A stretch of DNA of 64,000 nucleotides, from NCBI RefSeq assembly GCF_006345805.1, contig NC_043015.1, positions 37,820,001-37,884,000 on the forward strand. The letters run 5' to 3'. The position numbers and the translations under genes are program-made. How positions within the stretch are numbered: the stretch's first letter is position 1; every line of letters begins with the position of its first letter. The stretch comes from Octopus sinensis. Its lineage: Eukaryota. A model generated the notes under the pieces. It had not been told where the DNA came from, made no database searches, and saw nothing but the letters and a program-made list of their open reading frames with translations. This document shows positions 2,480 through 58,459 of this stretch, piece after piece.

Positions 2480-4239
2480 CTGGGCAGAGAGAGAGAGAGA
2501 GAGATAGGGGGTAGTGTGAGGAGCGCAGCAGTGAAAATGTACTGTAGTAGGAGAGAGCGGTGGGGGGAGAGGGTTGCTGTCTCTTGGCTTGGGCTTAGCT
2601 TTCTAGTCTCTTTGTCCCTAATGGTGTGTGCGTGGGTTCGCCACTGTTTGTCGTCCCTCCTCCTTTGTGGGTCCAGCGGTGGTGGTGGCGACCGTGTTCA
2701 TTGTCTACTCGGGTCGATGTTTGAACTAAAAGGAAGTAAGGCAAAGTTAGGTTAAAGTCACCTGCAAGGCCATCACCACCACTACTACTACTACAACTGC
2801 TACCTCCCCCGTAATTTATCGCCCACCGCCATCTACGTGTGGTGGTGGTGGTGGTGACCTCTACTACAGTAAAATCCCGCCAACTTGTCTCTCTCTCCTT
2901 CTTCCCCTCCTCACTCGCAACTGCCATATTCTTTTCTCTGTCACATTGACGAATGGATTTCGTTTTTAAATTGTAGTTCATTCAGTGAAGAATATCTCTG
3001 TCCTCCTCATTGTGAGAATCTCCGCTGGGTTTTTCTGGGGTTTTTTCCTCCTCCCAATGTGTATGTTCTCGCATTGCCCAGTGATCGGCTGAAATACTTC
3101 CATTAAGAACTTTGCTTTTGTGTCGGTCCCTTAGTTATCTGGTAACACCCTGTGCCCGGTTTTGACCTCGGAACAAAAGGGATCGTAACATATTTTGAAG
3201 TATGACAACCCAGCATTTTCAGTGGCCTAGGTGGGGAACGGGCGGAACAGCTAGGTTTACTTTCCTACTGCATGGTTCCGAGTTCGATCTTACACTAAGG
3301 CAGTTTTTCTCCGAGGATTGTCGATAAATATATAGATCGATAGTTTAAGGAATGGGGTCTCTAATCGATCGACCCTTGAAGTCGTTAAATATTCTCTAGC
3401 TTTTTTTTATATATATTTATAAGTTTGTAGAGTTTACAGTTCGATCAACGTGCACTGAAACTAGGCGATCGGGAATTTGCTCCTTTTATATTGTAGAATT
3501 TCCTTGTTCTTAGGTTTTAGACTCTCTCAACCTATGCCGTTATTTTGACCAAAACAAATTTGAGAAACAGAAGACCCCTCTCTCTCTCTCCCGCCTCAAA
3601 CAAAATACTGTGGACGTATTGATTATTCTTTGAAAATGATGGTTTTGGGTGGTGGTAATGACCGTTATTTGAACTCGTTAATGGATTGCGTGTCTTAGAT
3701 GTGGTGTCGGTTTACACTTCACTGAATGGTTTTTAAAAGTGGCTTTGCAATCGTAGCGTCTCCGGTTTCGATTGCAGTGCATGACACTTTTTGCTCGTCC
3801 CCCGTCCCTACTCTAGCTTCAGGGTGATCCAAGTCTTGGAGCTGAATGTGGTTAGAAAGTCTGAATAAACTGCCACTGTCACACTAATTTCCGGTTCAGG
3901 GTTGCAAGTGTCTATGGAATTCTCAGCCGCTTCAAGCAACTAGAATAGTCATCTTGGAAACCGATGGAGATCCATTCCCTTTCATATGTTATTAGACTTC
4001 TTTGTAATGGTAATTCCTTGTAGTGTGATGTATTGGTTTTGTAATGTGACAGTGACTGGAGGGGACCTTGTTTGCTGACACAAACGTAATAATCATAATG
4101 AGCTCAAAACCTTTGGAAGGTAGCAATGGCTGCAATCCAGTGATTAAAACCCGTTAAGACTCAGAAGCAATGACTTCTACCCTTACCCCACACACAGAGC
4201 CAGTCATTGCTGCAAGGGTATGCTGAGCATGTGGCACAG

Positions 4240-37740: not shown

Positions 37741-37902
37741 ATGTATTTATGCTGGTATCCGACTTACAACCAAGCTCCACTACATGTACCTCCTGTACAC
37801 CCTCTGCCCACCCTTCCAGCCCCGGGTCCACCACCACCACCCAGTGAGATAATATTACCATTACAGTTTGCCACTGAACAAATTTTCCCTGTCAGTAGGA
37901 AG
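37741..37902 (+). CDS. PTBP1: PTB alternative first coding exon, 54 aa proline-rich N-terminus (MYLCWYPTYNQAPLHVPP...IFPVSRK)
   Basis: ATG at 37741, open for 162 nt to a strong AAG|gtgagt donor in phase 0. Splicing to 43913 gives SRK|RGSEEL. Confidence 0.7.
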
Positions 37903-43912: not shown

Positions 43913-44017
43913 AGAGGATCGGAAGAACTTATGTCCCACAGCCCAATGGTTACGAACGGGACCGGGATGAGCCCCCACCACGTGGATAGTGCAGATATGA
44001 ACAATGATGCCAAAAAG
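43913..44017 (+). CDS. PTBP1: PTB exon RGSEELMSHSPMVTNGTGMSPHHVDSADMNNDAKK
   Basis: ttacag| acceptor, AAG|gtaagg donor, 105 nt. Matches human RGSDEL...VTNG...NGNDSKK. Confidence 0.95.
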
Positions 44018-44768: not shown

Positions 44769-44918
44769 GTAAAACTGGAGCAGAGCCAGGCAGCTACAGT
44801 GTCTAAAGTTGTTCATCTGCGTGGTCTCCCAATAGAGGCATCTGACCAAGATGTTATTCCTCTTGGCATACCTTTTGGCCGCATAACCAATTTTCTACTC
44901 CTGAAGCAAAAGAATCAG
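44769..44918 (+). CDS. PTBP1: PTB exon, RRM1 N-half (VKLEQSQAATVSKVVHLRGLP...LLKQKNQ)
   Basis: ttgtag| acceptor, CAG|gtatgc donor, 150 nt. Homologous to SRVIHIRKLP...GLPFGKVTNLLMLKGKNQ. Confidence 0.96.
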
Positions 44919-45085: not shown

Positions 45086-45232
45086 GCTTTCATGGAATTC
45101 TCAGACGAGAGACAAGCAGAATCAATGGTGTTATATTACACAAACGACAAACCTAGAGTACGCAACAAAGATGTCTATGTCCAGTTTTCCAACCACAAGG
45201 AGTTGAAGATAGACGTAGCACATCCTTATCAA
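45086..45232 (+). CDS. PTBP1: PTB exon, RRM1 C-half (AFMEFSDERQ...VQFSNHKELKIDVAHPYQ)
   Basis: ctgtag| acceptor, CAA|gtgggt donor, 147 nt, QFSNHKELK motif. Confidence 0.95.
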
Positions 45233-46108: not shown

Positions 46109-46240
46109 AACACAAATACTCAAGCAGCTTTGCAGGCTGCACAGGCCATCATGGGAAGTCCAGAGGAAATGAACAAGACCATTCTGAGAGTTATTATAGA
46201 TAACATGGTGTTCCAAATCAACATAGACATTCTGTATCAG
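46109..46240 (+). CDS. PTBP1: PTB exon, RRM1-2 linker and RRM2 start (NTNTQAALQAA...TILRVIIDNMVFQINIDILYQ)
   Basis: ttccag| acceptor, CAG|gtaaag donor, 132 nt. Confidence 0.96.
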
Positions 46241-46349: not shown

Positions 46350-46401
46350 ATATTTTGCAAATTTGGGACGATTCAGAAGATTATTACATTCACAAAAAAT
46401 A
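46350..46401 (+). CDS. PTBP1: PTB exon, RRM2 (IFCKFGTIQKIITFTKN)
   Basis: tttcag| acceptor, A|gtgagt donor, 52 nt, phase 0 to 1. Confidence 0.96.
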
Positions 46402-46840: not shown

Positions 46841-46899
46841 ATACCTATCAGGCCGTCATACAGTTTAGCGACCCAGTCAGTGCAAGAAGTGCCCGAATG
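46841..46899 (+). CDS. PTBP1: PTB exon, RRM2 (NTYQAVIQFSDPVSARSARM)
   Basis: tcatag| acceptor, ATG|gtaagt donor, 59 nt, phase 1 to 0. Confidence 0.96.
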
Positions 46900-47906: not shown

Positions 47907-48069
47907 ACTTTGGATGGTCAGAATATTTACAATGGGTGCTGTACGATGAGAATTGATTATTCAAAAATGACGAGTCTTAATGTAAAGTACAATAATGAGA
48001 AGAGCCGAGACTACACCAATCCCAGCCTCCCTGCTGGTGACGCTTCCGTGGATCAGGCTTTGACTTTTG
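47907..48069 (+). CDS. PTBP1: PTB exon, RRM2 end ([20 protein letters not shown]...DQALTF)
   Basis: ttgtag| acceptor, G|gtaagt donor, 163 nt, near-identical to vertebrate PTB. Confidence 0.97.
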
Positions 48070-49357: not shown

Positions 49358-49480
49358 GTTCCCCTGGTGTGTTGTCGTCGACAATTGCAGCTGTGCCTGG
49401 CCTAGGAACTGCCCCACTAACCACATTTGGTGCCGCACCCGGAGCTACGCTGCTTTCTGACCCCAGTCAGCAGTATATTG
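49358..49480 (+). CDS. PTBP1: Probable PTB RRM2-RRM3 linker exon (GSPGVLSSTIAAVPGLGTAPLTTFGAAPGATLLSDPSQQYI); 3' boundary uncertain
   Basis: ttaag| acceptor in phase 1, open Ala/Gly/Pro-rich frame resembling vertebrate alternative exon 9 (GAPGIIS...). Only weak donors: 49465, 49480, 49507, 49540 (phase 1) and 49472 (phase 2). Confidence 0.65.
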
Positions 49481-49592
49481 GTGCTGATATGCAGATCTGC
49501 ACTTCTGGTAGTGTAGCATTTTTAATTTTGATAAGCCAGGGTGGTAGTTTTGAACATGCATGCTTCTAATATCTCTTTTGTGTTTGGTCTAT

Positions 49593-50268: not shown

Positions 50269-50289
50269 CTCCCGGAGTGGGTCCGCCAG
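50269..50289 (+). CDS. PTBP1: PTB 21-nt linker microexon (APGVGPP)
   Basis: Pyrimidine tract then ttgtag|CTCCCGGAGTGGGTCCGCCAG|gtaagt. Phase 1-1, frame-preserving, consensus donor, GC-rich island in a U/C-rich intron. Confidence 0.75.
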
Positions 50290-52717: not shown

Positions 52718-52836
52718 CTGTACCGATGTCTGGCTTTGGTTTGACTGCTGCAGGTATGGGTGCTGCACGGCTCAGTATGCCCTTACAATCTCAAGCTGGT
52801 AACTGTGTGCTCTTGGTTTCCAATCTGGATGAAGAG
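52718..52836 (+). CDS. PTBP1: PTB exon, linker end and RRM3 start (AVPMSGFGL...AGNCVLLVSNLDEE)
   Basis: tatcag| acceptor, GAG|gtatgt donor, 119 nt. Human equivalent is AGNSVLLVSNLNPE. Confidence 0.96.
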
Positions 52837-54005
52837 GTATGTGCCCTTTATTTATTTGATACGTATATTGTCTAGTTTATACCCTGACATCTATACAGAA
52901 GAAAGAAAAAATAAAAAATAAAAAAACGTTTATCTGGACAGAAAGACTGGGGTATTAAGGTCTACCACCACCTCTACATTCGCAGGCCTCTACATTCTGC
53001 GACCTATCTGCCTGCGCCATCTCCTTTCCATTCTCTAATCTCACTGCATCATTTGAGTGGACAACTTCCCACAAAATGGCTGCCCACAAGTGTTTTGCTG
53101 TTTGACCAGGAATCTTTTTTTTTCTTCTTTCATTTTTTTTTTAGATTTTTAGAATTTGTCTCTTTCTCTGGTTCCTTCGCAGAACTTTTACTACCAAAAA
53201 AAAATATTTTTGTTGTGAAGACTTTTTCTTTTATCTCCTCCTCCTCCCCACCCCAATCCATGTGCTCCTCTGCCTAACAAACTCATGATGGATCAAGATT
53301 GGTTTTGGATATGGTGCTAACTGCAAACTTCTTGTGTCTTCCAAACACTGTCTGTAGAAAAAGCTCCTCCTCCTCCGACATATCACCTAATGGTTAGGGG
53401 GTGGGGCAGGATTTCTCATTTTTCTTCGATGCATCATCTCATGAGAAACAATTCTTCCACTTCTCAACAATTTCCTCCTGCTTTGGTCCACCAATTCTTT
53501 GTCTTTGTCTGCTGGAGCCACCCAAACCTCTGACCATTATCGCTGTGGTTTCTTGACCCAGTCTCTTCTACATCAGCTAGCTCTGTCCACATCTGACCAT
53601 CTCTCACAAAACCTCACAATTCCTTACAAATAACACTTGGCTCTTTTAGAATACCTTTTCCCCACCCCCCTCTCTCTCTTTTTTTTTTTTTTCCAAAATT
53701 TCAACCAAATGCTCCCTCTCCTCTCCTTCAATACTTCGTTATGCATGCTTCCTCATTAGCATGTCTTTTTTTTTTCCCTCCCTCTCTCTCTCTCCCCCTT
53801 CCCCCCACTAATTACCCACCTCTTCTCTCTCTCTCTCTCTCCTCCTCCTCCTATACTGATGCTACTGCTACACTAGCTGTCCAACTAACCACCCTTGACC
53901 AGCCACTGCTGCCTGTACCACACTGTATTACTTTCATTGATATTGTTGTTCTTGCTCTTTTTCAGAGTTTTATCTTCCATTTTACACACTCATGTATCAA
54001 CAAAA

Positions 54006-54170
54006 CTGATTTGTTCCTATTTTCTCTTTTTTTTCTTTTTTTTCTTTTTTTTTTTTTTCCGTCCCAACTTACTTCGCTGGTGTTCCTCCACATGGACTAT
54101 CTATCGCTCGCTCGGACACTGATCTCACCCTATCTTCCGCTCTGCTATATTCCTGTTCCTATGACTCTAG
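54006..54170 (+). promoter_or_regulatory. Candidate distant branch point and polypyrimidine tract for the 34-nt exon
   Basis: No AG dinucleotide from 53968 to 54168. CTGAT at 54006-54010 is followed directly by a ~50-nt almost pure U/C tract. Confidence 0.6.
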
Positions 54171-54204
54171 ATGGTCACGCCCGACGTTCTTTTTACCCTT
54201 TTTG
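54171..54204 (+). CDS. PTBP1: PTB 34-nt exon (MVTPDVLFTLF), counterpart of PTBP1 exon 11 / PTBP2 exon 10
   Basis: ctctag|ATGGTCACGCCCGACGTTCTTTTTACCCTTTTTG|gtatgt. 34 nt, phase 0 to 1, needed to keep frame. Human equivalent is RVTPQSLFILF. Confidence 0.93.
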
Positions 54205-54733
54205 GTATGTTTTTAAGCACTCTTTTATTTCATTTGACAATTTATATAGAAAAACTTAGAAAAGCTAAGTGACATTTCATTTAATGTTCTCTCTTTTAAC
54301 ACCAAGAGATGTGCTGCTGCTGCCGCTGCCACTGCTGCTACCTGACTGAGTCTCTATTGTGTCCAGCTCTATTTCTTTTAGTGCCAACTAACTTAACCAA
54401 ACCTTCTCCAAGATCACTCACTTCAGCTTCTTCTAAATTAATAACCAGTCTTGAAACCAATTACTTCCATCATGCTTTATTTATATATTTTTTTTAATTG
54501 TTTTTAGTTTTCTTTCTTTTTTTTTTAATTAATTAATTTTCTGACCCCTCCCCTCCCCCTTTTCATCTTTCTCTCTTTCTCTTCCTCTCTCCTGACAACA
54601 GGTGAGGTGTTCAGTGTTTGATTATTTTCCAACATAGCCTAAAGAACCGTTTTAATAAAGTATGATGGTTACTTCTTCCAAGGGCTGCGTGGGTTTTTCA
54701 TACATAAAGTTACACTCAAAAGATTACTTTTTT

Positions 54734-54770
<37 letters not shown>

Positions 54771-55447
54771 TCTTCCCCTCCTCAGGTAAGTGGTGGTGGA
54801 GACCCTGGCTGTGTCAGGAGGTTCAGTCAGGTATTTTAGTCTGGTATCATATGGTCCACTCTGCTCAAAATACGCATGCTCTTGAGATAGCACAGATTTT
54901 ATGTAACACACACACACACACAGTTTTGGTTTCGCTAATGGCTCATCCAATTTCCATTCCCAAAACTCGACCATTGGGCATTTTTAATCAGAAATTATGC
55001 AGAACCTCTTTAGAACAGCATTGATTATTGTTGTATTCAAAACTTATTCTGGCACCTTCCATTTTCACATATTGTTCTTGGGCGTTCACCACATGTTGTA
55101 CTTATTTTACACAATATTCTGATTCACTCCATGTTGACATGGAAACAGCTACACACACACTCACACATGTATATCCTAATAAAGCAATGCAGGCTCCTTG
55201 AATCCTAATTTGGGCCACTTTTAAAGAAAGAGACTGGCCTCTGTTGGCACAAAAACAAACTTGTCCTTCCTTGTTAAGGCCAAACCACTACGGTATGGTG
55301 CAGGGTGGGGTGTGAGTTCCATGTTAAGGTGTTTCGAAGACGGGGTTTTGGCTAGTGTCTTCCTAAGACCCAGTCCTCGACAAATCTAGTTCGGTTCATC
55401 GGTTTTTACTCCAGTCTCAGTACATGTTGTGCTTTTTATTTTACTAG

Positions 55448-55540
55448 GTGTGTACGGTGATGTGCAACGCGTGAAAATCCTTTTCAACAAGAAGGATAAT
55501 GCACTGGTACAAATGGCGGAGCCTCACCATGCTCAATTAG
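55448..55540 (+). CDS. PTBP1: PTB exon, RRM3 ([31 protein letters not shown])
   Basis: tactag| acceptor, G|gtaagt donor, 93 nt. Confidence 0.97.
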
Positions 55541-55781: not shown

Positions 55782-55888
55782 GTAGCAAATATCTATCCGT
55801 TGGCATTGATGGATTTCACTTGAAATTTGAAATTAATCGGTTTTGTTTTTTCTTGTATCATTCTGCTATTGCTTGGTTCTCGTTGCAG

Positions 55889-56007
55889 GATTCCGGCTTA
55901 ACAAGAGACTACACAAATTCCCCACTCCACAGATTCAAGCGACCTGGCTCAAAGAACTGTCAGAATATATTCCCCCCCTCAGCAGTTTTGCATTTATCTA
56001 ACATTCC
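55889..56007 (+). CDS. PTBP1: PTB exon, RRM3-4 linker and RRM4 start ([40 protein letters not shown])
   Basis: ttgcag| acceptor, CC|gtgagt donor, 119 nt. Confidence 0.97.
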
Positions 56008-56116: not shown

Positions 56117-56191
56117 ATCTAATGTTCCTGAAGAACAGCTCAAAGATATGTTTGCTGAATATGGCACTGTAAAAGGGTTCAAATTCTTTCC
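56117..56191 (+). CDS. PTBP1: PTB exon, RRM4 (SNVPEEQLKDMFAEYGTVKGFKFF)
   Basis: cttcag| acceptor, CC|gtaagt donor, 75 nt, phase 2-2. Confidence 0.96.
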
Positions 56192-57740: not shown

Positions 57741-57804
57741 GAAAGACAGGAAAATGGCCCTCATCCAAATGGGATCCATTGAAGAAGCTGTGAAAGCTCT
57801 TATT
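57741..57804 (+). CDS. PTBP1: PTB exon, RRM4 (KDRKMALIQMGSIEEAVKALI)
   Basis: ttctag| acceptor after long U tract, ATT|gtaagt donor, 64 nt. Confidence 0.97.
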
Positions 57805-58390: not shown

Positions 58391-58459
58391 TGCCTCCACA
58401 ACTATCCTTTGAGTGAAAGCAATCATTTGCGTGTTTCATTTTCCAAGTCAACAATTTGA
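58391..58459 (+). CDS. PTBP1: PTB last coding exon (CLHNYPLSESNHLRVSFSKSTI*)
   Basis: ttgcag| acceptor, TGA at 58457-58459, conserved C-terminus HLRVSFSKSTI. Confidence 0.97.
   Translation, partial: CLHNYPLSESNHLRVSFSKSTI

Follow-up and report, generated by a model that had tools for sequence, protein, structure and literature searches.

A 34-nt exon in the PTB gene of Octopus sinensis carries the architecture of the vertebrate PTB splicing switch

A switch that is both autoregulatory and cross-regulatory, acting by AS-NMD on vertebrate PTBP1 exon 11 and PTBP2 exon 10, is said to have been described by Wollerton in 2004. The architecture of this PTBP1 exon 11 / PTBP2 (nPTB) exon 10 switch has been characterized in detail (Gooding 2006, PMC1431707; Spellman 2007, PMC1940037). 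For human PTB exon 11 the AG exclusion zone extends over 381 nt and the branch point lies at -351; the zone measures 438 nt in nPTB and 590 nt in Fugu (PMC1431707, PMC1940037). The -351 branch point was demonstrated by mutagenesis and a good candidate at -51 is dispensable (PMC1431707). Furthermore, the extended conserved sequence upstream of the vertebrate exon occupies the same stretch as its AG exclusion zone (PMC1940037). An earlier note on the DNA studied here had called it established that the two vertebrate exons are 34 nt long, use a distant branch point and are skipped under PTB control to trigger NMD, and this literature bears it out (PMC1431707, PMC1940037). Vertebrate PTBP3 (ROD1) also has an orthologous 34-nt exon, as does octopus; this exon 10 is spliced from a conventional branch point, at -21, shows little upstream conservation, and there is no evidence that it is skipped (PMC1940037).

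The O. sinensis PTB gene lies inside the stretch of DNA analysed here (64,000 nt of NC_043015.1, hereafter the window), as determined by tblastn and by placing the annotated isoform P0003 exactly on the DNA. Three of its exons are central to the comparison.

52718..52836, + strand: upstream constitutive exon (...AGNCVLLVSNLDEE); octopus isoforms mapped exactly, GT-AG borders checked
54171-54204, + strand: 34-nt candidate switch exon (ATGGTCACGCCCGACGTTCTTTTTACCCTTTTTG); acceptor AG at 54169-70, donor GT at 54205-6
55448..55540, + strand: following exon, encoding 31 residues; its skipped frame reads VCTVMCNA and then TGA

The 34-nt exon lies precisely where the earlier note had placed it, with AG and GT borders. 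It is entered in phase 0 and left in phase 1, is located in RRM3, and encodes MVTPDVLFTLF plus the first base of a Gly codon. The exon is 74% pyrimidine, carries a UCUU motif, and its synonymous sites are almost frozen between phyla. The octopus RRM3 peptide MVTPDVLFTLF-G corresponds to RVTPQSLFILF-G in human, with xVTPxxLFxLF-G as the common pattern. Judged by its equal peptide, length and phases, the exon is a true orthologue of vertebrate PTBP1 exon 11 / PTBP2 exon 10.

The upstream exon ends in phase 0 (GAA GAG|gt) at 52836, with its donor at 52837, and the predicted skip junction 52836^55448 reads ...CAATCTGGATGAAGAG|GTGTGTACGGTGATG. Since the exon is 34 nt long, skipping shifts the frame and translation ends 8 codons into the next exon. 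From 55448 the skipped frame is GTG TGT ACG GTG ATG TGC AAC GCG TGA, which confirms the stop that the earlier note had read at 55472-55474 with five junctions downstream; in silico, five exon junctions and ~0.5 kb of former coding sequence lie 3' of this TGA. The predicted skip product has 371 residues and is without most of RRM3 and all of RRM4. The early TGA arises from the R-V-K codons CGN GTG AAR and is present in most of the 29 loci examined, being absent from shrimp and some oligochaete-type loci. Octopus is thus like PTBP1 and PTBP2 in its orthologous 34-nt exon, its phases, its RRM3 peptide and the TGA that skipping generates from R-V-K codons. An alternative 3' splice site was also seen inside the upstream constitutive exon, at 52756.

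The intron sequence that flanks the exon holds the following features.

53968..54168, + strand: AG exclusion zone, 201 nt, 74% pyrimidine
54006..54010, + strand: candidate distant branch site CTGAT with A at 54009 (-162), the best yUnAy match with the strongest U tract after it
54020..54060, + strand: U-rich polypyrimidine tract of 41 nt, C and T only, a candidate PTB site (CT-tract scan, sequence)
54041..54170, + strand: conserved upstream intron element (blastn, intron-only HMM, two-species octopus comparison)
54205..54249, + strand: conserved downstream intron element GTATGTTTTTAAGCACTCTTTTATTTCATTTG... (alignment, nhmmer)

The length of 201 nt that had been given for the AG-free zone is exact, the closest AGs on its 5' side being at 53964-65 and 53966-67. 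The zone ranks third among the 3287 AG-to-AG gaps of the window and first among the gene's 18 acceptors, where the others with at least 100 nt free of AG belong to introns of only 104-586 nt. The exon was recovered at 81 further loci from molluscs, annelids, a nemertean, crustaceans, insects and vertebrates. In a survey of AG exclusion zones across bilaterian orthologues, a check that the earlier note had proposed, the acceptor of the next exon was used as matched control, and the zone of the 34-nt exon was the longer in 22/22 lineages (median 171 vs 28.5 nt; paired Wilcoxon p ~5e-7). Between -150 and -3, the acceptors of the 34-nt exon in these lineages contain 22 AG and 103 GA where 80 are expected, AG being about 5-fold below GA, whereas the control acceptors (165 AG, 172 GA, 165 expected) show no AG depletion. 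Zones span 197 nt in O. bimaculoides, 162 in Patella and 118 in Magallana among molluscs, 153 in Owenia and 95 in Tubulanus among other spiralians, and 104 in Penaeus, 407-474 in Daphnia and 180 in a termite-type gene among arthropods; those measured in vertebrate loci span 410-572 nt. The octopus zone is shorter than the vertebrate zones described previously (201 nt vs 381-590 nt).

Two invertebrate lineages, contigs L016 and L041, have the orthologous 34-nt exon with a conventional acceptor. Together with PTBP3 exon 10 they indicate that the design can be lost, and PTBP3 exon 10, like these contigs, would represent the look of the exon after such a loss. Because the 34-nt exon can be spliced with a conventional acceptor in all three cases, the design argues for a regulatory role.

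The earlier note had further proposed that the exon uses a distant branch point. The CTGAT with A54009 at -162 and the U/C tract are all present, with 92% pyrimidine and 72% U in the 25 nt that follow, but an equally good match, ACTGATC, exists at -49 (A at 54122, 80% pyrimidine after it), so the distant A54009 is one of at least two candidates. Patella, Magallana, Owenia and Tubulanus each have a branch-site-like sequence with a U tract at the corresponding position, and the position of the U-rich tract at 54020-54060, which appears to belong to the candidate distant branch site, is kept in molluscs, annelids and the nemertean. Octopus and limpet both retain the -49 candidate, which is accompanied by a fair pyrimidine tract. 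A long AG zone, a putative branch-site and U-tract unit at the 5' end of the zone and a proximal look-alike are all shared with PTBP1 and PTBP2.

Additionally, the flanking introns are themselves conserved. The upstream element consists of the blocks CCGTCC, YGCTGRTG, (A)TGTGGAY, TCGCTCGGAC and CGCTCTGCTATA, ends in TCTAG, and contains five YGCY motifs as well as the ACTGATC with A at 54122; its YGCY blocks lie at 54075-54082, 54104-54115 and 54138-54150. The best blastn match of the gene between octopus and Patella covers 188 nt at 81% identity (E 9e-38) and includes 130 nt of intron; at other exons of the PTB gene at most 9 nt of intron are conserved between octopus and limpet. O. sinensis and O. 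bimaculoides differ by one mismatch in 214 nt at the element, against a background identity of 85%. An intron-only HMM with three molluscs as training set matched the polychaete-like L017 (2e-5) and L067 (6e-7) and Owenia (1e-3), and all matches abut the exon. On the downstream side, GTAYGTTT..AAGCACT.TTTATTTC is common to Octopus, Patella, Magallana, Owenia, the Paralvinella-type L053, L017, L067, L029 and L066 (nhmmer E 1e-4 to 0.3 for non-training sequences), and Tubulanus has the variant CAGCACT. The conserved intron shared by cephalopod, gastropod, bivalve and annelids amounts to ~130 nt upstream and about 21-40 nt downstream. Thus molluscs and annelids, at least, share the sequence of the flanking intron elements, and in having an extended conserved upstream intron with pyrimidine- and UCUU-rich flanks the octopus gene is again like PTBP1 and PTBP2.

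Intron-only nhmmer searches (--max; 3, 4 and 9 training sequences) gave no match to these flanks in vertebrate, arthropod or oligochaete-type loci, and octopus and vertebrate flanking introns share no statistically detectable sequence similarity. By eye, vertebrate PTBP2/PTBP1 introns do look octopus-like (TGGAYGATYTGT...CGCTC upstream, gtatgtt..AGCACT downstream); as nhmmer finds no match in vertebrates, we treat this resemblance as unproven. An Rfam search gave no match at E <= 1, which excludes a known intronic ncRNA. A structured RNA element was likewise rejected, since the single-sequence fold gave z = 0.37 with neither covariation support nor thermodynamic excess, as was a stem with the downstream AGCAC that loops out the exon, for the latter two reasons. 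The upstream blocks did not pair with the 3' splice site and the start of the exon more than shuffled sequences do, and a single compensatory change was seen.

Based on these features, we consider it somewhat probable that the exon at 54171-54204 operates as a self-limiting AS-NMD switch of PTB in octopus. In this mechanism, splicing of the exon would rely on a branch point and its polypyrimidine tract lying 100-160 nt upstream, A54009 being the best candidate, with a long spacer to the 3' splice site; such a distant unit is suggested by the AG exclusion zone, which is conserved and selectively maintained, and by the conserved distal U tract. When abundant, PTB would bind the pyrimidine tracts in and around the spacer, the UCUU-containing sequence of the exon and the CU tracts of the downstream intron. 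The conserved YGCUGRUG / CGCUCUGCUA blocks, together with the CUG cluster downstream, may recruit a YGCY/CUG-binding partner of PTB. PTB binding would then block exon definition and the exon would be skipped, a step that motif enrichment and the vertebrate precedent both suggest. Skipping would bring about the frameshift, the stop 8 codons into the next exon and the 371-residue product computed from the sequence, and removal of this mRNA by NMD would close a negative feedback loop on the PTB level. In octopus this loop is probable rather than established, being predicted from sequence; in vertebrates, skipping, sensitivity to NMD and dependence on PTB have all been demonstrated.

In Drosophila and C. 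elegans, NMD is independent of downstream exon junctions. The argument from five junctions may therefore not apply, though NMD would still be promoted by the length of the 3' region. Our full-text literature search found no report of this switch for cephalopods or any other invertebrate. A junction-peptide search of sequences that include assemblies of public RNA-seq recovered skipped ORFs of vertebrate PTBP2 as positive control, and it returned zero exon-skipped ORFs for octopus, oyster, limpet, shrimp, termite-, ant- and Daphnia-type genes, with low power for a rare isoform degraded by NMD. All annotated Octopus isoforms include the 34-nt exon. The Octopus vulgaris protein P0130 (402 aa) was considered as a skip product and rejected, as it is truncated at its N terminus and retains the 34-nt exon. 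The sole invertebrate protein that ends in the skip tail is Cryptotermes P0226, in which the gene predictor may have missed a microexon. The claim of a complete switch in a mollusc is therefore supported in its architecture, but no skipped transcript from an invertebrate was found by a low-sensitivity search that did recover vertebrate PTBP2.

These observations bear on the possibility that the exon is a constitutive microexon. It would then always be included, the AG zone, distant branch and intron blocks would form an ancient enhancer or exon-definition device, and vertebrates would have co-opted this device later, with no feedback in invertebrates. The exon's presence in every annotated isoform and the outcome of the junction-peptide search fit such a view, as does the extreme conservation of the exon and its synonymous sites, which is expected of splicing enhancers. 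However, L016, L041 and vertebrate PTBP3 (PMC1940037) splice the 34-nt exon with an ordinary acceptor and the design is thus unnecessary for inclusion, the exact same design is a repression platform in vertebrates, distant branch points are strongly tied to regulated skipping (PMC1431707), and the motifs enriched here are of the repressor type, UCUU/CUCU. We therefore regard constitutive inclusion as rather unlikely, and prefer the self-limiting switch.

A second possibility is that the exon is switched without autoregulation. Here other RNA-binding proteins, for example of MBNL/CELF type at YGCY/CUG motifs, would skip the exon and turn PTB off in particular tissues, in a manner nearer to PTBP2 cross-regulation than to self-limitation. 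The most conserved blocks lack classical PTB motifs, and YGCY forms the core of the conserved spiralian blocks and occurs upstream more often than expected across lineages (4.5 vs 2.9, p = 0.0015); downstream it is enriched in some lineages only (octopus 6.2 vs 1.3, mayfly-type 7.0 vs 1.8). Just 3' of the octopus exon, the gene's density of TGC/CTG reaches its maximum (15 per 60 nt; 99th percentile 8) in the following feature.

54297..54366, + strand: CUG/UGC-repeat cluster (GTGCTGCTGCTGCCGCTGCCACTGCTGCTACCTGACTG), +95 to +150 (density scan)

By analogy with the 'D' element of rat Tpm1 exon 3 (PMC3643581), this cluster is a candidate site for an MBNL/CELF-type co-regulator. Tpm1 exon 3, which is repressed by PTB and MBNL1, has its elements in the order distant branch point, PTB-binding pyrimidine tract, UGC/YGCY cluster, exon, UGC/CUG cluster and second pyrimidine tract (PMC3643581), an order that the candidate elements of octopus appear to match. 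Unlike the octopus exon, it belongs to an unrelated gene and is subject to a mutually exclusive choice with no frameshift and NMD; MBNL-type binding in octopus is predicted from its motifs. The case for regulators other than PTB is weakened by Tpm1 itself, where MBNL works together with PTB and not in its place (PMC3643581), and by the enrichment of PTB-type motifs, which is more general across phyla: in the 22 lineages the pyrimidine fraction is 0.67 vs 0.54 at the control acceptor, and UCUU/CUCU motifs, as potential PTB sites, occur at 3.7 vs 0.7 per 100 nt. Furthermore, a single PTB gene is apparent in most invertebrates examined (gutless-worm-type contigs have two), which leaves no paralogue for cross-regulation. 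Together these points make a switch that bypasses PTB improbable, and self-limitation by PTB remains our preferred reading.

Finally, CT microsatellites abound in octopus introns, AG-free stretches of at least 100 nt occur 51 times in the window and those of at least 200 nt three times, and the probability of no AG in 201 nt given the zone's base composition is ~0.034 for octopus alone, which is not extreme; yet the idea that the AG-free stretch is a by-product of local pyrimidine richness is very hard to sustain, as it is rejected by the AG-versus-GA control and effectively refuted by comparative data, with an orthologous zone in 22/22 lineages of very different genome composition, AG depletion confined to the zone rather than seen at control acceptors, and a sequence itself conserved across phyla.

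The earlier note had dated the design before the protostome/deuterostome split. For the architecture this holds, as it is common to molluscs, annelids, a nemertean, crustaceans, insects and vertebrates, and comparison of these loci makes it well supported that the exon and its AG-zone architecture are ancestral to bilaterians. With the design shared from worms to insects to fish, the feedback switch itself is probably more than 500 million years old. More tentatively, the switch including its distant branch point may be one device, essentially unchanged since the bilaterian ancestor; the spiralian intronic element of ~200 nt would then have been conserved for more than 500 million years, and its YGCY-centred blocks would dock a second, unrecognised co-repressor that works with PTB. 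We think this fuller proposal possible, and less probable than the switch as such.

To our knowledge, very few regulated splicing events are common to protostomes and deuterostomes. The PTB exon appears to keep its odd length, its AG-free upstream design and its stop on skipping across Bilateria, and in molluscs and annelids its flanking intron sequence too. Were skipping and PTB dependence confirmed, homeostatic AS-NMD would have a dated and testable case of bilaterian age, the more than 20 lineages, some of which lost the design, would form a natural comparison for learning what distant branch points are for, and a few deeply conserved blocks of intron would stand out as candidate binding sites of co-regulators. 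A single inherited bilaterian device would be among the oldest known regulated alternative-splicing events. Were there no skipping, the vertebrate switch would have been built upon an older constitutive exon-definition device, a result that is still useful. Similar to the switch proposed for octopus PTB, the ultraconserved poison exons of SR-protein genes (Lareau & Brenner 2015, PMC4379411) are self-limiting by AS-NMD, have a regulated region far more conserved than neighbouring introns and follow an ancient principle. In SR-protein genes a poison exon is included, whereas in octopus PTB an essential coding exon would be skipped, apparently the same exon across Bilateria; SR-protein unproductive splicing is, in the words of that paper's title, "conserved yet evolutionarily flexible" (PMC4379411).

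The dense TCTT/CTCT that the earlier note had reported on both sides of the exon is moderately so within +/-200 nt, where 8 occur on each side (intron mean 4.5, 90th percentile 10 per 200-nt window), but the densest CU tracts, at -407 to -320, -151 to -111, +362 and +523, are mostly farther out. Two regions with long tracts were delimited.

53764..53852, + strand: two long CU-only tracts (53764-53806, 53819-53852), -407 to -320 (CT-tract scan)
54566..54785, + strand: two long CU tracts (54566-54593; 54727-54783, including a (CT)n run) (CT-tract scan)

The upstream region is a candidate distal platform for PTB binding, a function suggested by its composition. In the downstream region, each tract ends in a juxtaposed pair of 3' and 5' splice sites (54601|54602 cag|GTGAGG; 54785|54786 cag|GTAAGT) and conservation relative to O. 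bimaculoides is above background, which makes the region a candidate downstream PTB platform, set of decoy sites or poison cassette.

The window carries a polypyrimidine tract-binding protein (PTB) gene on the + strand, and exons colinear with a human PTBP1 probe span about 43.9 to 58.5 kb. The nearest database proteins are Octopus PTB isoforms, and Octopus sinensis isoform X8 (P0003) matches the window at 100% identity. Coding-exon boundaries were set by isoform mapping with GT-AG enforced.

Coding exons of the PTB gene in the window; the two cassettes are from annotated Octopus isoforms
37741-37902, +, coding exon before the cassettes
43913-44017, +, coding exon before the cassettes
44769-44918, +, coding exon before the cassettes
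45086-45232, +, coding exon before the cassettes
46109-46240, +, coding exon before the cassettes
46350-46401, +, coding exon before the cassettes
46841-46899, +, coding exon before the cassettes
47907-48069, +, coding exon before the cassettes
49391-49507, +, cassette exon (117 nt)
50269-50289, +, cassette exon (21 nt)
52718-52836, +, exon preceding the 34-nt exon
54171-54204, +, 34-nt exon
55448-55540, +, exon following the 34-nt exon
55684-55781/4, +, one of the last coding exons
55889-56007, +, one of the last coding exons
56117-56191, +, one of the last coding exons
57741-57804, +, one of the last coding exons
58391-58459, +, one of the last coding exons

Annotated Octopus isoforms also include an alternative 3' splice site (52718/52756) in the exon preceding the 34-nt exon and a 3-nt alternative 5' splice site (55781/55784, with a GC donor at 55785). 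The annotated alternative events are located in the RRM2-RRM3 linker and after RRM3, and both cassette exons lie within long blocks conserved between Octopus species.

The exon at 54171-54204 is orthologous to the vertebrate switch exon. It measures 34 nt, as the earlier note had reported, with AG before and GT after, and encodes MVTPDVLFTLF, its last base opening a Gly codon; the human counterpart is RVTPQSLFILF-G, in identical phases. Its synonymous sites are nearly frozen across phyla. Skipping shifts the frame into the predicted stop: 52836, which ends in phase 0, joined to 55448 gives VCTVMCNA and then TGA at 55472-55474, with five junctions downstream. The AG-free zone upstream is exactly the 201 nt first described, the closest AGs being at 53964-53965 and 53966-53967, and is the longest among the 18 acceptors of the gene; the other zones of at least 100 nt are all in introns of 104-586 nt. 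The proposed distant branch point is one of at least two candidates. The CTGAT motif with its A at 54009 (-162) and the best U tract are indeed present, the following 25 nt being 92% pyrimidine and 72% U, but a second CTGAT (A at 54122, -49; then 80% pyrimidine) matches equally well.

Following a suggestion in the same note, we surveyed the zone across orthologues in named loci of O. bimaculoides, Patella caerulea, Magallana gigas, Penaeus japonicus, Owenia fusiformis and Tubulanus polymorphus, and in metagenome contigs scanned for a degenerate pattern that covers the exon together with its splice sites. The pattern matched 75 contigs (about 0.1 by chance, on our own estimate), all 75 of which encode the PTB peptide; four are cDNA. 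Peptide identity of neighbouring exons to named proteins assigned contigs to Paralvinella palmiformis (104/104 identical), Daphnia, termites/cockroach and attine ants (100% each), mayflies (98.5%), a polychaete-like annelid, a divergent annelid group with two paralogues, a teleost, vertebrate PTBP2 and a PTBP1-like gene. The 34-nt exon is at the same place in every surveyed locus, named or metagenomic. With one representative per lineage (n = 22, spanning at least five phyla and not fully independent), the median AG-free zone is 171 nt (range 86-572), compared with 28.5 nt for the next exon of the same contig, and the zone of the 34-nt exon is the longer in 22/22 (paired Wilcoxon p ~5e-7). Tubulanus is borderline, with 95 nt versus 80 nt. 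Two contigs have conventional short zones, L016 (insect-like, exon at 3727) with 37 nt and L041 (compact genome, exon at 1093) with 12 nt, and represent natural loss-of-design controls.

The AG exclusion zone is selectively maintained across Bilateria, together with an enrichment of repressor-type motifs. UCUU/CUCU occurs 3.7 times per 100 nt upstream of the 34-nt exon versus 0.7 in controls (p = 1e-4), and the pyrimidine fraction is 0.67 versus 0.54. The zone is more than pyrimidine richness, because positions -150 to -3 hold 22 AG, compared with 103 GA and about 80 AG expected from composition, whereas control acceptors hold 165 AG and 172 GA with 165 AG expected. In most of the 29 loci with both neighbouring exons readable, a skipped transcript would meet an in-frame stop within the first 6-9 codons of the exon that follows; this early stop is missing from the shrimp and from some oligochaete-type loci.

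The PTB switch mechanism is already well known in vertebrates, and the literature facts behind the original claim were verified (PMC1431707, PMC1940037). In human PTB exon 11 the AG exclusion zone spans 381 nt and mutagenesis has proven a branch point at -351, a good candidate at -51 being dispensable; the zones of nPTB and Fugu are 438 and 590 nt (PMC1431707). For the homologous ROD1/PTBP3 exon, the branch point is conventional and no skipping is known (PMC1940037). For cephalopods and all other invertebrates, we found no description of the switch, the AG exclusion zone or the intron conservation in full-text literature, a search to which subscription journals were mostly closed and which an earlier mention may have escaped. 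The octopus case would represent a vertebrate-type mechanism with unusually deep evolutionary reach.

By this mechanism the octopus exon would be spliced via a distant branch point and at times skipped, skipping would depend on PTB, and the skipped mRNA would be subject to NMD. We lean towards such a conserved PTB feedback switch over three other explanations. A constitutive exon-definition device is possible but distinctly less probable: PTBP3 and the two short-zone invertebrate lineages use this exon with a conventional acceptor, which argues that the special design was kept for regulation rather than mere inclusion and thus favours the feedback switch. A switch operated by factors other than PTB is less probable again. 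A compositional artefact is very improbable, since AG is depleted relative to GA and to composition upstream of the 34-nt exon but not at the control acceptors.

Flanking-intron sequence is also conserved across molluscs and annelids. The top nucleotide match of the whole gene between octopus and Patella is not a large coding exon but 54041-54225 (188 nt, 81% identity, E 9e-38), in which the 34-nt exon is flanked by 130 nt of upstream and 21 nt of downstream intron; all other PTB exons have at most 9 nt of conserved intron. Between O. sinensis and O. bimaculoides, 54036-54249 contains one difference in 214 positions, compared with 85% identity overall. The shared upstream blocks are, in order, a U tract, CCGTCC, YGCTGRTG, (A)TGTGGAY, TCGCTCGGAC, CGCTCTGCTATA and the TCTAG acceptor; downstream is GTAYGTTT..AAGCACT.TTTATTTC. 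Intron-only profile HMMs from three named molluscs, run on all loci after masking of the exon, matched polychaete-like L017 (E 2e-5), L067 (6e-7) and Owenia (1e-3), each exactly adjoining the exon, and gave no match in arthropods, vertebrates, the divergent annelid group or Tubulanus. These annelid-type matches point to an element common to at least Mollusca and Annelida. A broader nine-sequence profile found nothing beyond the mollusc/annelid group, and a by-eye likeness to vertebrate PTBP1/2 introns had no statistical support in the profile searches.

The conserved element matched no Rfam family. RNAalifold proposed that the upstream blocks base-pair with the 3' splice site and the beginning of the exon, a reading that was rejected: the stability of the fold did not exceed shuffles (z = 0.37), and in nine spiralian sequences the pairs showed no excess over column shuffles and a single compensatory change. 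YGCY motifs form the block cores and are modestly enriched upstream across lineages (4.5 versus 2.9 expected, p = 0.0015; control acceptor 1.6). Across the whole octopus gene, CUG/UGC density peaks 95-150 nt downstream of the exon (54297-54366, GTGCTGCTGCTGCCGCTGCCACTGCTGCTACCTGACTG), and a weaker cluster lies upstream at about 53857-53920. In rat Tpm1, PTB and MBNL1 jointly repress exon 3 (PMC3643581); the octopus clusters recall the MBNL-binding UGC elements on both sides of that exon, and the order of elements, with flanking CU tracts, mirrors it. Joint repression by PTB and an MBNL-type factor may be considered a lead rather than a finding.

Skipped transcripts were sought with a chimeric query built from skip-junction peptides, in which the end of the upstream exon is followed by the frameshift tail, against a protein collection including ORFs from assembled public RNA-seq. 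The positive control worked, as several vertebrate PTBP2 RNA-seq ORFs of 345-357 aa end ...SNLNEE+VFM(V/E)MCS(V/A). Skip-junction ORFs were not found for octopus, oyster, limpet, shrimp, termite-, ant- or Daphnia-type genes in these assemblies, where rare NMD-degraded isoforms are poorly represented; the normal oyster isoform is on dozens of contigs. This negative result lowers confidence in a functional loop without refuting it. The Cryptotermes secundus gene model B7P43_G07328 (P0226) ends ...VLLVSNLNEEVYMEMCSV, the exact product expected from skipping, which could equally reflect transcript-supported skipping or a gene predictor missing the 34-nt exon.

Daphnia-type contigs (L024, L054, L068) combine AG-free zones of 407-474 nt with downstream introns of only about 210-300 nt in a compact genome, which parallels the Fugu observation of Gooding et al. 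The gutless-worm-type contigs of the divergent annelid group carry PTB paralogues of RVTPDALFALF and KVTPDALFTLF types (L010, L028, L030, L045 and L049 versus the L015 group), each with the 34-nt exon preceded by AG-free zones of more than 100 nt; CUG/UGU repeats abound in their upstream introns in place of mollusc-type blocks. In octopus, the 1243-nt downstream intron contains juxtaposed 3'/5' splice-site pairs at 54601-54602 (caacag/GTGAGG) and 54785-54786 (cctcag/GTAAGT), each ending one of its longest CU tracts (54566-54593 and 54727-54783). They resemble recursive splice sites, and the 185 nt between them would make a frame-shifting cassette with in-frame stops; conservation of this region with O. 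bimaculoides is above background.
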